From sequence record NC_027364.1: 64,000 bases of DNA; one strand, written 5' to 3'. The notes beneath the pieces are model-generated. The model searched no databases. It was not told the DNA's origin and saw nothing but the letters and a program-made list of their open reading frames with translations. Below, piece after piece: positions 1 to 64,000 of the stretch (positions are counted from its first letter, which is position 1; the number at the start of each line of letters is the position of its first letter). A program made the position numbers and the translations under genes.

Positions 1-523
1 CATTATTTTTATCAAAAACACCAGTTGTTGTATACATCATTTCTTGTACTGGGTTATATTGACGAACATTAAATGCAAGTAATTGACGGAAGTCGGTATC
101 AGTACTGACAATGATATGGTCATCTTCAGGATGTGTTTGAATCCAGCGAGCAATAAAGTCATCAGCCTCTGCTTCTGGTGCACGTAGTAAAGTACTGTTA
201 GTCTGATTATCTACGAAGTCGATGAAATCATTAATCATTTCAAACATCACTTCCATTTCTTCTTTTTCATCTTTAGTTTTGCTGGCTGCTTTTACTGCAC
301 GATTTCTTTTATAATCTTCGTCAAACTTTTTACGCCATGATTTACCCTCTGCACAGAAAACAACGTGATTAGGATTAAACATGTCTTGTAGTTTTCTTAA
401 ACCGCTCAAAGTAATATGTAGTGCTAATCCCACCTTTGTCCATATGTCAATACTTTGAGATGATACGTTGATACTACGATGGAAACAGTTTTGAGTATCG
501 ACGAGTAGATATAATTTTTTCAT
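1..523 (-). CDS. rnh: RNase H / 5'-3' flap exonuclease (T4 rnh-like), truncated by window edge
   Basis: Not in ORF track (runs off window). Manual translation from ATG at 523: [17 protein letters not shown]...[17 protein letters not shown]...EAEADDFIA...[12 protein letters not shown]; FEN/RNase H acidic motifs; SD AAGGA upstream. Confidence 0.85.
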
Positions 524-589
524 TGTAAATCCTTTTAATAGTGTTGATTTGGCACATGAAAACTCAATTTTCAATGATTTTCATTGATA

Positions 590-62000: not shown

Positions 62001-64000
62001 GTGCAGAAGGTATCAACGTTCTACCTAAAGTTCAAAGTACTGAAGTTACAGTGTCTGCTCTAAATGCAACAAATGCAGTAGTTTCTGGTGATGTTTCAGC
62101 AGCAACAGCTTCAATCTCAGGTGCAATTACTGGTGGGTCAGCAACACTATCTGGTATTGGAACTGCTCTAAATGTAACTAATAACGCAACTGTTGGTGGT
62201 GTACTTACTGTTGGTTCTATTACTTCAGCGGCAGAAAATGTATCCATTACTAAAAATACCGCGATTACTGGTAATTTAGCAGTATCTGGAACACTAACTG
62301 CGGGTGTTATTGATCTTAGCACAACTGATGTGTCTGTGAAGACATTAACTTCTCTAGGTGATGCAACCGTTCAAGGTAACTTAACTGTTGATGGTTCTAT
62401 TGACCTAAGTTCTGCAAACATCGTCGGTGTAACACTAGAAAGTACTGGCTCTACCACTGTAGGTACTGATTTGATTCTAACTACAGGTAACATTACAGGT
62501 AGTCCATCTATTTCTGGTAACTTGGGTGTTACTGGAACCACAACGTTAACTGGTGCAACTACAGTTTCAAACACATTGTCAACTGGTGGTAAACTAACAG
62601 TTAATACTGGTGGTATTCAAGTAGTTGATGGTGGTATTCAAGTTGATGCAGGAACTATTACCGCACCAAGTGCTAATATTTCTGGTGACTCTACCCTTAA
62701 TAGTGCAACTGTAACTACTACCCTTGGTGTTACTGGTGCAGCTAGTATGAATGGTGGCCTTACAGCATCTACTCTAGATGTAACTGGTGACAGTACTGTA
62801 CAAAAACTAACTGTTAAGGGTGCATTTATTCCTGAAGGTGGTTTGGACCTATCCGGTGCTGATCTTAACGTGAATAGCGTAACTGCTGCAACCACATTAA
62901 GTGTTACTGGTGCAAGTACTCTAACTGGTGGTGTTTCCACTTCAACTGTTACTGCATCCGGTAAGGTAACTGCACAAGAATTAAGTACTGGTACATTGGC
63001 AGTAACCACAAATGGAACAGTTGGTGGTACTTTAGATGTAACTGGAAAGGCAACAGTCGGTTCACTAGATTCAGGTGCAATATCTGCAACTTCTGGTACA
63101 TTTAGTACTACACTAGGTGTAACAGGTGCAGCAACATTTGGTAACAATGTTAATATTACTGGCACGTTAACCCCAGGTGCATTGGATTTATCTAGTACTG
63201 ATGTAGATGCTAACAGTCTTTCTGTTGCAACAACCCTACATTCAAACGGCAATGCAACAATCGGTGGTACACTAGGTGTAACTGGTGCAGCAACTGCTCC
63301 ATCAATCGCTCTTAATGGTGAAGGAACTGCATTAGCAGTTACTAACAATGCAACAATTGGTGGTACACTAGGTGTAACTGGAAAGGCAACTGTCGGTTCA
63401 CTAGATTCAGGTGCGGTATCTGCAACTTCTGGTACATTTAGTACTACAATAGATGTAACTGGTGCAGCAACCTTTGGTAATAATGTTAACATTACTGGTA
63501 CATTAACGCCAGGTGCATTGGATTTATCTAGTACTGATGTAGTTGCAAACAGTCTTTCTGTTGCAACCACACTACATTCAGATGGTAATGCAACAATTGG
63601 TGGTACATTAGGTGTAACTGGTGCAGCAACTGCTCCATCAATCACTCTTAATGGTGAAGGAACTGCATTAGCAGTTACTAACAATGCAACAATTGGTGGT
63701 ACATTAGGTGTAACTGGTGCAGCAACTTTAGGTTCACTAACAACTTCTGGTGCAGTGAAAACTGGTTCTAATGTTATTATTGGTACTAAGATCGGTGAAC
63801 AACCAGAAACAGTTCAGATTTTCCCTAACACTTACATTGCTGGTTCCTTGCGTGTAGATGGTGGTATCAACGCTGATATTGATGTTAGTGGTCAAACAAT
63901 CGAACCTTATGCAGTTGTTGCGGCTGACACTATTAGTGCAGCGGGTAATATTACTTCTGGTGCAGAGTTGATTTCTAAATCAAGCAAACCTAATTTGGGC
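59078..64000 (+). CDS. Very long repeat-built tail fibre (more than 1641 aa, truncated by window edge)
   Basis: Not in ORF track. GGAGG SD, MYSIKTDLDITGAGTVGKDLLVKGNA...; Thr/Gly/Val/Ser-rich LTVTG/IGG beta repeats, open to window end. Confidence 0.85.
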   Translation, partial: MYSIKTDLDITGAGTVGKDLLVKGNAVFNNNLTVNGTVTFANATFTAIESSTANITSTLDVGGKATLSGGLGVEGNTTIGSAVVGSDTATINSNATFNGTVSVGSDFTQTAGTTTLQATKVKNLEVAETTAFKGNITADVGTTAAFDKITANTAEITNVSTTDISSTGTATFKDVTISGTLGGEFNLSDLNAVTLNVTGASNQQGAVTFGANVTGINSTATFKDIRIGSNSESQTFRLSFPYTAPGKRPTVILQNEIQSELMSPANLTVLTSASFGNASLSSYGITGNGLNKLDYLTVSGNNTQSPDTPLLEVQKGKTKVADFEVTGTATIPNIESTGTANFNNINISGVLGGTFQLDDINAASLNVTGATSLVGGVTLGSNITGYNSTASFKAISLGQSSQDSAVKLGFGYTAPSQRPTVILPNEVQSELVSPSTLNVLKTATFGNAALSTYGITGNGLNKLDYLTITGNATQDPSTPFLQVGGKAILNDVDFTGTVTGLTVDVSGQDLTPNSVVAATNIKGATLESTGNTTVGAKLTVTGDIAGTTATLSGALSAGSVSSGSITGTTSVSAPTISASTEVTAPTITASGTVSGQTINGTNISATTLTAPTISGNTNFTENVDITGNLTVTGTVTPGTIDLSTTDVSAKSITTTAGANIGGDLVVQGSFDLSAADINVKSLTSSGIVKSNDIVNANVLPVLNSTTITATTVNADDITVTGSANLGTIYSSSSVLVGSTLTVTGETTTASLVTPTISNASGVTISNNTNVTGDLTVTGAVIPGSIDLATTDVNAKSITTTAGATIGGNLTVNGTVDLTTADVTVKSLTSTGAIVSNESTISSVLPKLQSTDATIATLGSTTANITNLNVTGASTVADVTSSGKVKAVSVETPTISNVDGVSISNNTSITGDLTVSGTVTPGAIDLSTTDVSAKSITTTAGANIGGDLVVSGTVDLSGADVSVKSLTSTGIITVSSAEGINVLPKVQSTEVTVSALNATNAVVSGDVSAATASISGAITGGSATLSGIGTALNVTNNATVGGVLTVGSITSAAENVSITKNTAITGNLAVSGTLTAGVIDLSTTDVSVKTLTSLGDATVQGNLTVDGSIDLSSANIVGVTLESTGSTTVGTDLILTTGNITGSPSISGNLGVTGTTTLTGATTVSNTLSTGGKLTVNTGGIQVVDGGIQVDAGTITAPSANISGDSTLNSATVTTTLGVTGAASMNGGLTASTLDVTGDSTVQKLTVKGAFIPEGGLDLSGADLNVNSVTAATTLSVTGASTLTGGVSTSTVTASGKVTAQELSTGTLAVTTNGTVGGTLDVTGKATVGSLDSGAISATSGTFSTTLGVTGAATFGNNVNITGTLTPGALDLSSTDVDANSLSVATTLHSNGNATIGGTLGVTGAATAPSIALNGEGTALAVTNNATIGGTLGVTGKATVGSLDSGAVSATSGTFSTTIDVTGAATFGNNVNITGTLTPGALDLSSTDVVANSLSVATTLHSDGNATIGGTLGVTGAATAPSITLNGEGTALAVTNNATIGGTLGVTGAATLGSLTTSGAVKTGSNVIIGTKIGEQPETVQIFPNTYIAGSLRVDGGINADIDVSGQTIEPYAVVAADTISAAGNITSGAELISKSSKPNLG
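59573..60590 (+). repeat. Diverged 510-bp (170-aa) tandem module within long fibre
   Basis: STGTA...YTAP..RPTVIL.NE.QSEL.SP...YGITGNGLNKLDYLT twice, starts 59573 and 60083. Confidence 0.8.
63023..63694 (+). repeat. Tandem 336-bp (112-aa) duplication within long fibre
   Basis: Units start at 63023 and 63359, partial third at 63695; 25 nt and 7 aa differences by manual alignment. Confidence 0.9.

Follow-up and report, generated by a model that had tools for sequence, protein, structure and literature searches.

The palindrome AGTACT is iterated throughout the genome of Escherichia phage PBECO4, a RaK2-like jumbo myophage of the genus Asteriusvirus, with 891 copies against 118 expected (7.5x) and, in its extended form CAGTACTG, 191 copies against 3.4. 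The excess is independent of coding, the sites are under purifying selection, the trait is confined to one clade of phages and a subset of the sites occupies fixed positions in early promoters. The stretch of 64,000 nucleotides described here (the window) is identical to PBECO4 positions 284,114-348,113 and forms the last 64 kb of the record (NC_027364.1; 348,113 bp); it carries structural and replication genes, including those for the DNA polymerase, the major head protein, the portal, the baseplate and a 3333-residue virion protein. The whole genome was analyzed piecewise in seven pieces (L003-L008 and the window). We tentatively regard AGTACT, with CAGTACTG preferred in Asteriusvirus, as an iterated palindrome of the kind represented by HIP1 of cyanobacteria, acting at the DNA level, maintained by selection and quite possibly recognized by a twofold-symmetric protein that the phage encodes. 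A full-text literature search found no earlier report of AGTACT in RaK2-like phages.

The window contains 118 copies of AGTACT (1.84 per kb), distributed across nearly all genes and on both strands, and 25 copies of CAGTACTG (Table 1). The zero-order expectations are 21.9 and 0.66, and dinucleotide-preserving shuffles give 20.3 +/- 4.6 (maximum 31) and 1.0 +/- 0.9 (maximum 4), respectively. These figures agree with an initial annotation of the window, which had counted at least 113 hexamers and at least 24 octamers against about 22 and fewer than one predicted; its 24 octamer coordinates are all correct and one octamer, at 43429, had been missed. Under maximal-order Markov models the word is significant at each order (GTAC, z score 5.0; AGTAC, 7.8, the top pentamer; GTACT, 5.6; AGTACT given its pentamers, 5.0), so that the excess is built up at every level. 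The octamer is fully explained by the preferences of the two flanks, which act independently and predict 23.5 copies against the 25 observed.

As a control for coding, synonymous codons were shuffled inside every annotated gene, a procedure that leaves both its protein sequence and its codon usage unchanged. The annotated coding sequences of the window hold 102 AGTACT against 27.5 +/- 4.4 after this shuffle (z score 16.9) and 23 CAGTACTG against 1.4; ACTAGT, with the same two codons in reversed order, is depleted (13 against 27). All three frames are used, with 59 sites read as AGT-ACT, 31 as xxA-GTA-CTx and 12 as xAG-TAC-Txx. The other 16 sites of the window lie outside annotated genes; nine of them fall inside an unannotated open frame on the plus strand and seven are truly intergenic. 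The occurrence on both strands, in several frames and in intergenic DNA claimed in the initial annotation is thus correct (its sites at 15128, 21383, 32096, 33086 and 33097 are all intergenic), and the enrichment outlives control for codon usage, dipeptide content and GTAC frequency.

The signal is likewise genome-wide, acts at the DNA level and is HIP1-like, as the initial annotation had proposed. Each reading frame of the genome is enriched 3.0-4.0x over the synonymous-shuffle expectation, and DNA outside the open reading frames (ORFs) contains 173 AGTACT against 13.9 expected, although the ORFs were called greedily and a minority of the 173 are in truth coding sites. The proteome is bent to keep the word: Ser-Thr pairs number 665 against 460 expected (Thr-Ser, 464) and Val-Leu pairs 741 against 535 (Leu-Val, 525), each about 200 in excess, and AGTACT spells 52% of all Ser-Thr pairs. 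AGTACT is the great exception to a purging of palindromes in this genome: the 348 kb contain no GCGC (290 expected) and no copy of 23 of the 64 palindromic hexamers, whose expected counts are 8 to 31 each, AT-rich palindromes other than AGTACT show no enrichment and ACTAGT is depleted (75 against 118). The purging of palindromes is alike in every AGTACT-rich relative sampled.

The word is short and free of context. At position -1 of the half-sites C accounts for 45% and G for 8%, and the logo is the same for 172 non-coding as for 718 coding sites, with no information past this position. An extended operator-like motif (TTCAGTACTGAA) at the non-coding sites was rejected on this identity, and a dispersed repeat element, such as a repetitive extragenic palindrome (REP) or a miniature inverted-repeat transposable element (MITE), was rejected since conservation stops at position -1. 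The nine one-mismatch neighbor words examined occur at 0.48-2.0x expectation, and the deamination products AATACT and AGTATT at 1.05x; repair of the very-short-patch type was rejected because it would require depleted neighbors and none of the nine is depleted in that manner. No positional tie to start codons or gene ends was found beyond a twofold excess right past stop codons, and the ribosome-binding region is avoided.

Purifying selection on the sites was established from alignments of a 47 kb part of the window with three further Asteriusvirus species and one Yersinia phage. In vB_Ec-M-J (84% identity) 70% of the sites are intact compared with 38% of all hexamers, which ranks AGTACT third of 546 hexamers; in the Yersinia phage (71.5% identity) the values are 38% and 18%. 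The third codon positions within sites carry 23 changes in vB_Ec-M-J against 53.1 expected from the same codons elsewhere, and 22 against 33.3 in the Yersinia phage; the synonymous conservation in relatives to which the initial annotation had tied its proposal is therefore present. Comparison with vB_Ec-M-J also shows turnover, with 24 sites lost and 35 gained. With turnover standing beside conservation, both the density of sites and the individual sites seem to be under selection. The conservation seen in vB_Ec-M-J and the Yersinia phage is not found in UE-S1, which shows a net loss of sites (31 lost and seven gained in the late region; 28 lost and eight gained in the largest aligned block of the early region). 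In homologous DNA, UE-S1 has about 20-30% fewer AGTACT than PBECO4 (L010 and L019 compared with the window and L004), with losses four-fold over gains, and many of the losses alter the protein, for example ACT to TCT or GCT.

Across the RaK2-like family AGTACT stands at 5-12x chance. The samples, with observed and expected counts, were those of 121Q (84 and 16.7), vB_Ec-M-J (97 and 16.2), Klebsiella phage RaK2 (99 and 13.5), Cronobacter phage GAP32 (98 and 13.7), Yersinia phage fHe-Yen9-04 (82 and 13.9) and Xanthomonas phage XaC1 (159 and 13.6). The synonymous shuffle gives z scores of 12-18 in RaK2, GAP32, XaC1, the Yersinia phage and IMG/VR locus L029. In nine IMG/VR contigs (at least 8 kb, capsid protein at least 89% identical) AGTACT is the top over-represented palindrome (3.2-6.5x) and GCGC is absent. 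No enrichment was found in relatives with a capsid protein at most 72% identical, in Agrobacterium phage Atu_ph07 (3 and 13.7), in a 50 kb sample of E. coli K-12 (3 and 11.6) or in the unrelated coliphage ECGD1 (0 and 13.8), and the trait is thus confined to one clade. Host mimicry was rejected on the depletion in the E. coli sample. Only Asteriusvirus and RaK2 strongly prefer C at position -1, which leaves the hexamer as the conserved core. In the distant relative L045 (IMGVR_UViG_3300044959_000303, 50176-71393; capsid protein 65% identical) a different palindrome is iterated, with TTCGAA at 68 against 7.1 and TCGA at 313 against 72; in coding sequence TTCGAA stands at 58 against 22 after synonymous shuffle. 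Such switching between palindromes is typical of symmetric recognition of the restriction/modification kind. CACGTG, TGGCCA, CAGCTG, TTGCAA and GTTAAC, considered as further iterated palindromes in relatives, were dismissed because the synonymous shuffle explains them by coding. ECGD1 (L016, Justusliebigvirus) lacks AGTACT yet has a homologue of the cytosine C5 methylase described below (about 51% identity), and its zero count suggests that coliphages really are under pressure from AGTACT-specific restriction.

A positional link exists at strong sigma-70-type promoters of small early genes, located outside the window at PBECO4 133-153 kb (L005:33000-50000 and L006:1-3100, minus strand). Here AGTACT starts either 27 nucleotides (21 cases) or seven nucleotides (19 cases) upstream of TATAAT, so that one site overlaps the upstream edge of the -35 element (AAAAGTACTTGCAA) and the other lies directly against the -10 element (AGTACTGTATAAT). 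The promoters follow the consensus AAAA[AGTACT]TGCAA...[AGTACT]GTATAAT (also written AAAA[AGTACT]TGCAA..[AGTACT]GTATAATGTTTTACAT), with the remaining spacer varying freely; four promoters have both sites, 20 bp apart. In RaK2, AGTACT is likewise found beside the -10 element. The late-promoter association proposed in the initial annotation is incidental. A fixed distance to a promoter fits about 40 to 55 sites and leaves about 700 sites inside genes unaccounted for. Comparison with fEgEco12 (PMC13070987) suggests that the promoter region may correspond to a 21 kb terminal repeat at the physical left end. The physical end of the genome probably lies in the adjacent non-coding DNA at 151.7-157.8 kb, which has up to 6.7 sites per kb.

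AGTACT is missing from just one long stretch of the genome, a zone of 7,620 bp at PBECO4 116,681-124,301 (L005:16681-24301), in which AGT is absent from the plus strand and ACT therefore from the coding strand, in any frame or spacer (about 143 expected). No other trinucleotide has a comparable gap, and the next largest distance from AGT to AGT is 444 bp. The threonine content of the zone is normal; none of its 98 Thr codons is ACT, compared with 41% in neighboring early genes. TCT stands at 0.39 of the control level, and CCT and GCT occur at normal levels. A conserved counterpart of the zone is found in 121Q (7,511 bp; L022:2982-10493) and vB_Ec-M-J (8,458 bp; L021:2982-11440), and a recent acquisition of this site-free 7.7 kb gap was rejected since the region is present throughout the genus. 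AGTACA stands in for AGTACT here (44 copies, 5.8 per kb), and CAGTACAG for CAGTACTG, alike in PBECO4, 121Q and vB_Ec-M-J. This substitution indicates that the zone is still subject to the pressure for the motif and, on one strand, to a second constraint that forbids ACT. Ten proteins encoded there were scanned against PHROGs, which yielded no functional lead. The zone is explained by none of the live readings alone.

PBECO4 encodes two DNA methylases, a Dam-family N6-adenine enzyme (PF05869, gp148) and a C5 enzyme of 286 residues (gp416, L007:21340-22200). Characterized PF05869 enzymes are GATC-specific. The Dam-family gene is conserved in every enriched genus. The best matches of gp416 by sequence among solved structures are the catalytic domains of the animal enzymes DNMT3A, DNMT3B and DNMT3C, ahead of M.HhaI and M.HaeIII, and bisulfite sequencing reported methylated CpG for its RaK2 homologue (PMC3622015). 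Since AGTACT contains no CpG, the C5 methylase would not target it and was rejected as the reader on these two grounds. A tblastn search with six methylase queries (the two PBECO4 enzymes and those of the Yersinia phage, the Agrobacterium phage and ECGD1) found no further homologue. The Yersinia phage carries an N6_N4 DNA methylase (L012:10989-11795) at the place that matches window positions 20613-21450, an interval of 840 bp from gp526 to the endonuclease VII gene without an annotated gene; tblastn found no remnant of the N6_N4 gene in PBECO4, and this lineage-specific enzyme was rejected as the cognate methylase since it is absent from PBECO4 and the close relatives sampled. In UE-S1 the C5 methylase (L013:2750-4630) has a predicted in-frame intein of about 340 residues (Hint and LAGLIDADG) at about residue 77/78, beside the conserved Pro-Cys motif, and the same split tblastn match (residues 78-286 only) is seen in ph0011, JNE01, TH47 and A4. 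Neither this intein nor the status of the Dam-family gene, which is present, explains the site loss of UE-S1. Virion DNA of fEgEco12 is cut as predicted by ClaI and NruI. Both enzymes are sensitive to CpG methylation, and this cutting is possibly inconsistent with the CpG methylation reported for RaK2.

In the reading that we favor, a phage-encoded protein with twofold symmetry and a 6 bp specificity of the restriction/modification kind would recognize AGTACT. The word would mark phage DNA as 'self' for a factor acting genome-wide, for example in DNA organization, recombination or the start of replication, and early transcription would also come under the control of a factor bound at the -35 and -10 edges of its promoters. 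The density of AGTACT in the phage is about 40x that in the host DNA sampled (about 2.6 against 0.06 per kb), and the word can therefore serve as such a mark. This density, the short, symmetric and context-free form of the word, the switch of palindrome in a relative and the restriction of the trait to one clade, in which it is strongest in a phage with a non-enterobacterial isolation host, together point to a symmetric sequence-specific reader that is most probably phage-encoded. Of the readings considered, that of a 'self' mark spread over the whole genome, with a further action at early promoters, accounts for most of the facts. Among the proposals of the initial annotation, a DNA-organizing protein and a nicking or recombination site are both still candidates.

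Several observations weigh against it. A 6 bp site is short for a classical repressor, and the spacing of the sites is irregular (coefficient of variation 1.23), on which ground a regular arrangement was rejected. Along genes the density of sites varies little, which leaves most of the sites without an evident local role. The promoter positions could stem from a single duplicated promoter cassette and then have been kept by a general pressure. Synonymous constraint within sites is not seen in UE-S1 (35 changes against 39.5), no gene difference accounting for this relaxation was established, and biased gene conversion can mimic purifying selection. The density of the non-palindromic AGTACA in the ACT-free zone implies that strict symmetry is not required. 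No candidate for the reader protein was found, and nothing of relevance emerged when ten candidate proteins were scanned against Pfam.

A possible, if somewhat unlikely, alternative is that AGTACT is the target of an orphan phage methyltransferase (the Dam-family gp148 or another), which would guard the DNA against restriction of the ScaI/Eco255I type, with an epigenetic or repair function of the methylated sites favoring their accumulation. Cyanobacterial HIP1 and alternate HIPs accompany cognate methylases (PMC4390886), a 6 bp palindrome is a typical methylase specificity, a Dam-family gene occurs in every enriched genus, a related lineage has switched to TTCGAA, and 891 unprotected sites would be costly under the restriction of coliphages that the absence of AGTACT from ECGD1 suggests. 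The enzymes at hand fit poorly, however: the C5 methylase is DNMT3-like with CpG reported as its target in RaK2 (PMC3622015), AGTACT has no CpG, the six tblastn queries revealed no further homologue, and the N6_N4 methylase is confined to the Yersinia lineage. The GATC specificity of the characterized PF05869 enzymes also speaks against gp148, and the neighbor words are not depleted, contrary to methyl-directed short-patch repair; the methyltransferase/repair pair envisaged in the initial annotation is thus not supported. A rather improbable reading is a programmed break or nick, in which a phage endonuclease would act at AGTACT and the ends would seed recombination-dependent replication or clamp loading for late transcription of a 350 kb genome with fixed ends. 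The phage has recombination genes of the T4 type (UvsX- and UvsY-like, a gp46/47-like pair and endonuclease VII) and numerous HNH and GIY-YIG nucleases, the sites are densely and evenly distributed, one zone is free of ACT in a strand-specific manner, and the genus has 21 kb direct terminal repeats and not permuted ends (PMC13070987). On the other side, no nuclease has been tied to AGTACT, cutting at 891 sites per genome would need tight limits, and the restriction patterns of fEgEco12 virion DNA match the in silico prediction, with no gross breaks. Quite improbable in our view is a strand-specific start signal in which 5'-ACT-3' would be the minimal site of a T4-type primase, TCT a weaker one and AGTACT the optimal form, giving a pppGUACU primer on both strands. 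The T7 and T4 primases recognize a trinucleotide together with its flanking context, in a hierarchy. The ACT-free zone also speaks for this reading, with ACT lacking on one strand over 7,620 bp, TCT reduced to 0.39 of control, CCT and GCT normal and AGTACA, at 5.8 per kb, keeping GTACT on the other strand only. Yet a primase site has no reason to be palindromic, the iteration of TTCGAA in a second lineage makes coincidence unlikely, ACTAGT carries ACT on both strands and is nevertheless depleted (75 against 118), and the promoter positions are left unexplained. A broader version is unlikely, though less so than the last two: the elementary signal would be strand-specific ACT, with AGTACT its back-to-back inverted pair, forming a dense cis-code for the replication, recombination or RNA-cleavage machinery of the phage that nearly the whole genome carries on its two strands and that has been erased from a single strand in the 7.6 kb block, with AGTACA in the place of AGTACT. 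If this were true, the ACT code would be an undescribed genome-wide viral signal with a strand-specific exclusion zone.

The sites might also be a by-product without function, created by a mutational, repair or gene-conversion bias, an explanation to which we give a poor chance. High turnover with many independent gains (35 in 47 kb compared with vB_Ec-M-J) and a mild enrichment among one-mismatch neighbors, at 1.0-2.0x expectation, are in its favor, and Elhai proposed such a model for HIP1; it is opposed by the synonymous positions within sites, which are 2.3-fold better conserved than the same codons elsewhere, by the lack of any specific depleted precursor word, by the lack of enrichment of other AT-rich palindromes and by UE-S1, which loses sites although it keeps both methylases (the C5 enzyme with its intein). 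Recognition by a host protein such as the nucleoid-occlusion factor SlmA is very improbable. AGTACT is the center of the SlmA site (GTGAGTACTCAC; PMC3020112) and most hosts of the clade are Enterobacterales, but binding by SlmA depends on G1, on T2 and on a purine at position 3 (PMC3020112), where the phage favors C and avoids G (8%); the genome contains no full SlmA-type site and only 16 half-sites, and enrichment peaks in a phage whose isolation host was Xanthomonas. The SlmA site was accordingly rejected for want of the required flanks. An artefact of codon usage, dipeptides, GTAC frequency or repeated protein motifs has a negligible chance. AGT, ACT and GTA are preferred codons and 17 sites lie in one repetitive fiber gene, but the shuffle that keeps amino acids and codon usage yields only 27.5 of the 102 coding sites, all three frames and non-coding DNA are enriched and ACTAGT is depleted, on which grounds this explanation was rejected; the same shuffle dismissed the five other candidate palindromes in relatives.

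The nearest known system is HIP1 (GCGATCGC) of cyanobacteria. Like AGTACT, it shows a many-fold excess with about one copy per few hundred bp, occurs in all reading frames and between genes, is conserved beyond neutral expectation and is replaced by other palindromes in other lineages. Unlike HIP1, AGTACT belongs to a virus and not a cell, is AT-rich and 6 bp long, has no identified cognate methylase, lacks a counterpart to the pattern of one-nucleotide deviations behind the HIP1 repair model and coexists with a near-total purging of other palindromes. The function of HIP1 and of the alternate HIPs is unresolved (PMC4390886, PMC5861425). Chi, the DNA uptake and uptake signal sequences (DUS/USS) and the FtsK-orienting polar sequences (KOPS) resemble AGTACT in being dense, genome-wide 'self' words selected for density rather than position; they differ in being asymmetric, orientation-biased and cellular and in being read by RecBCD, ComP or FtsK. 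A Chi-like or uptake-type word was rejected, since AGTACT is palindromic and is depleted in the host sample. TF1 of phage SPO1 and p6 of phage phi29 coat or mark phage DNA genome-wide and bind early promoters. AGTACT is likewise distributed genome-wide and at the -35/-10 edges of early promoters, but the analogy is functional only, as TF1 reads hydroxymethyluracil DNA and p6 bendability and neither reads a 6 bp word; no homologue of either was found, no search aimed at one having been made. The central hexamer of the SlmA site is identical to AGTACT, which lacks the required flanks and avoids G at position -1. Avoidance of restriction sites, known from phages, is extreme in PBECO4 (the missing 23 hexamer palindromes and GCGC), and AGTACT has the opposite sign. 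For the ACT-free zone alone, mRNAs that escape MazF by lacking ACA offer an analogy, in that a sense strand is devoid of one trinucleotide in all frames at normal amino-acid content; unlike that case, the zone keeps AGTACA surrogates and no ACU-specific nuclease is known in PBECO4.

Phages are textbook avoiders of palindromes, yet here coding capacity is spent on a single one, at the price of about 400 extra dipeptides and constrained synonymous sites. This implies an unrecognized protein-DNA interaction at about 900 places per genome, in a clade of widespread jumbo phages that are under development as therapeutic agents against plant pathogens and against E. coli, Klebsiella and Cronobacter. 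The phage offers a small, tractable system for the 30-year-old question of HIP1 function, since a 350 kb phage growing on E. coli K-12 is easier to recode, pull down and methylome-sequence than a cyanobacterium. AGTACT is also a strong metagenome signature for the clade, and its density predicts sensitivity to restriction of the ScaI/Eco255I type.

Table 1. AGTACT and CAGTACTG sites and associated features of the window (window coordinates; start positions where single numbers are listed)
Feature	Position	Strand	Remarks
AGTACT starts, 101-22902	101, 191, 1884, 3045, 4699, 5271, 5792, 6103, 6364, 6443, 7147, 7743, 8877, 9945, 10236, 10968, 10983, 11204, 12595, 13536, 15128, 15878, 16238, 16541, 16985, 18371, 18655, 19267, 19613, 20263, 20296, 20439, 21383, 21557, 21993, 22280, 22361, 22902		
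AGTACT starts, 23641-43430	23641, 24010, 24212, 25515, 26621, 26675, 27641, 27861, 28191, 28254, 28420, 29980, 29998, 30523, 31905, 32096, 33086, 33097, 33413, 33621, 35259, 35552, 36211, 36516, 36892, 37762, 38027, 38092, 38174, 38386, 38437, 38920, 39382, 39646, 41623, 42025, 42082, 42808, 43219, 43430		
AGTACT starts, 44665-63530	44665, 45209, 45781, 47216, 47255, 48869, 49633, 49928, 50602, 51640, 51957, 52967, 53267, 53900, 53966, 54005, 55000, 56601, 57608, 58324, 58870, 59573, 59729, 60083, 60239, 60659, 61004, 61187, 61562, 61622, 61976, 62036, 62441, 62792, 62915, 62984, 63104, 63194, 63440, 63530		
CAGTACTG starts (25)	100, 7146, 9944, 10235, 18370, 21556, 21992, 25514, 29997, 30522, 33085, 35551, 38091, 38436, 39645, 41622, 42024, 43429, 47254, 48868, 53965, 57607, 59728, 60238, 62791		
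Intergenic site	7743..7748		Gap between gp513 and DNA polymerase gene; directly past a terminator-like hairpin
Intergenic site	13536..13541		Adjoins upstream side of the ribosome-binding site of gp519 (minus strand); kept in 121Q, UE-S1, vB_Ec-M-J and Yersinia phage fHe-Yen9-04
Intergenic site	15128..15133		Gap between gp521 and gp522
Intergenic site	21383..21388		840 bp non-coding gap 5' of endonuclease VII gene
Intergenic site	32096..32101		Abuts late-promoter-like TATAAATA (AGTACTATAAATA)
Two intergenic sites, 11 bp apart	33086..33102 (33086, 33097)		Upstream of baseplate wedge gene gp537; both kept in UE-S1 and vB_Ec-M-J
Gene for 3333-residue virion protein	36637..46638	+	19 sites (1.9 per kb)
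Open frame, repetitive Ser/Thr/Gly-rich fiber- or adhesin-like protein	59753..64000	+	At least 1416 codons without stop; runs off the record end

The unannotated open frame at the end of the window contains 17 AGT-ACT (Ser-Thr) sites between 60083 and 63530, all in frame 0 by coordinate arithmetic. The RefSeq genes gp550 and gp551 lie opposite to it and look spurious, and the frame probably continues into gp001, a YadA-domain protein at the start of the record. The E. coli Chi sequence GCTGGTGG occurs 22 times in the PBECO4 genome (seven on the plus and 15 on the minus strand) against about two expected at zero order. CTGGTG, TGGTGG and CTGGTGCA are among the most over-represented words of the window, an excess that probably arises from Thr/Ala-Gly codon runs in structural genes.

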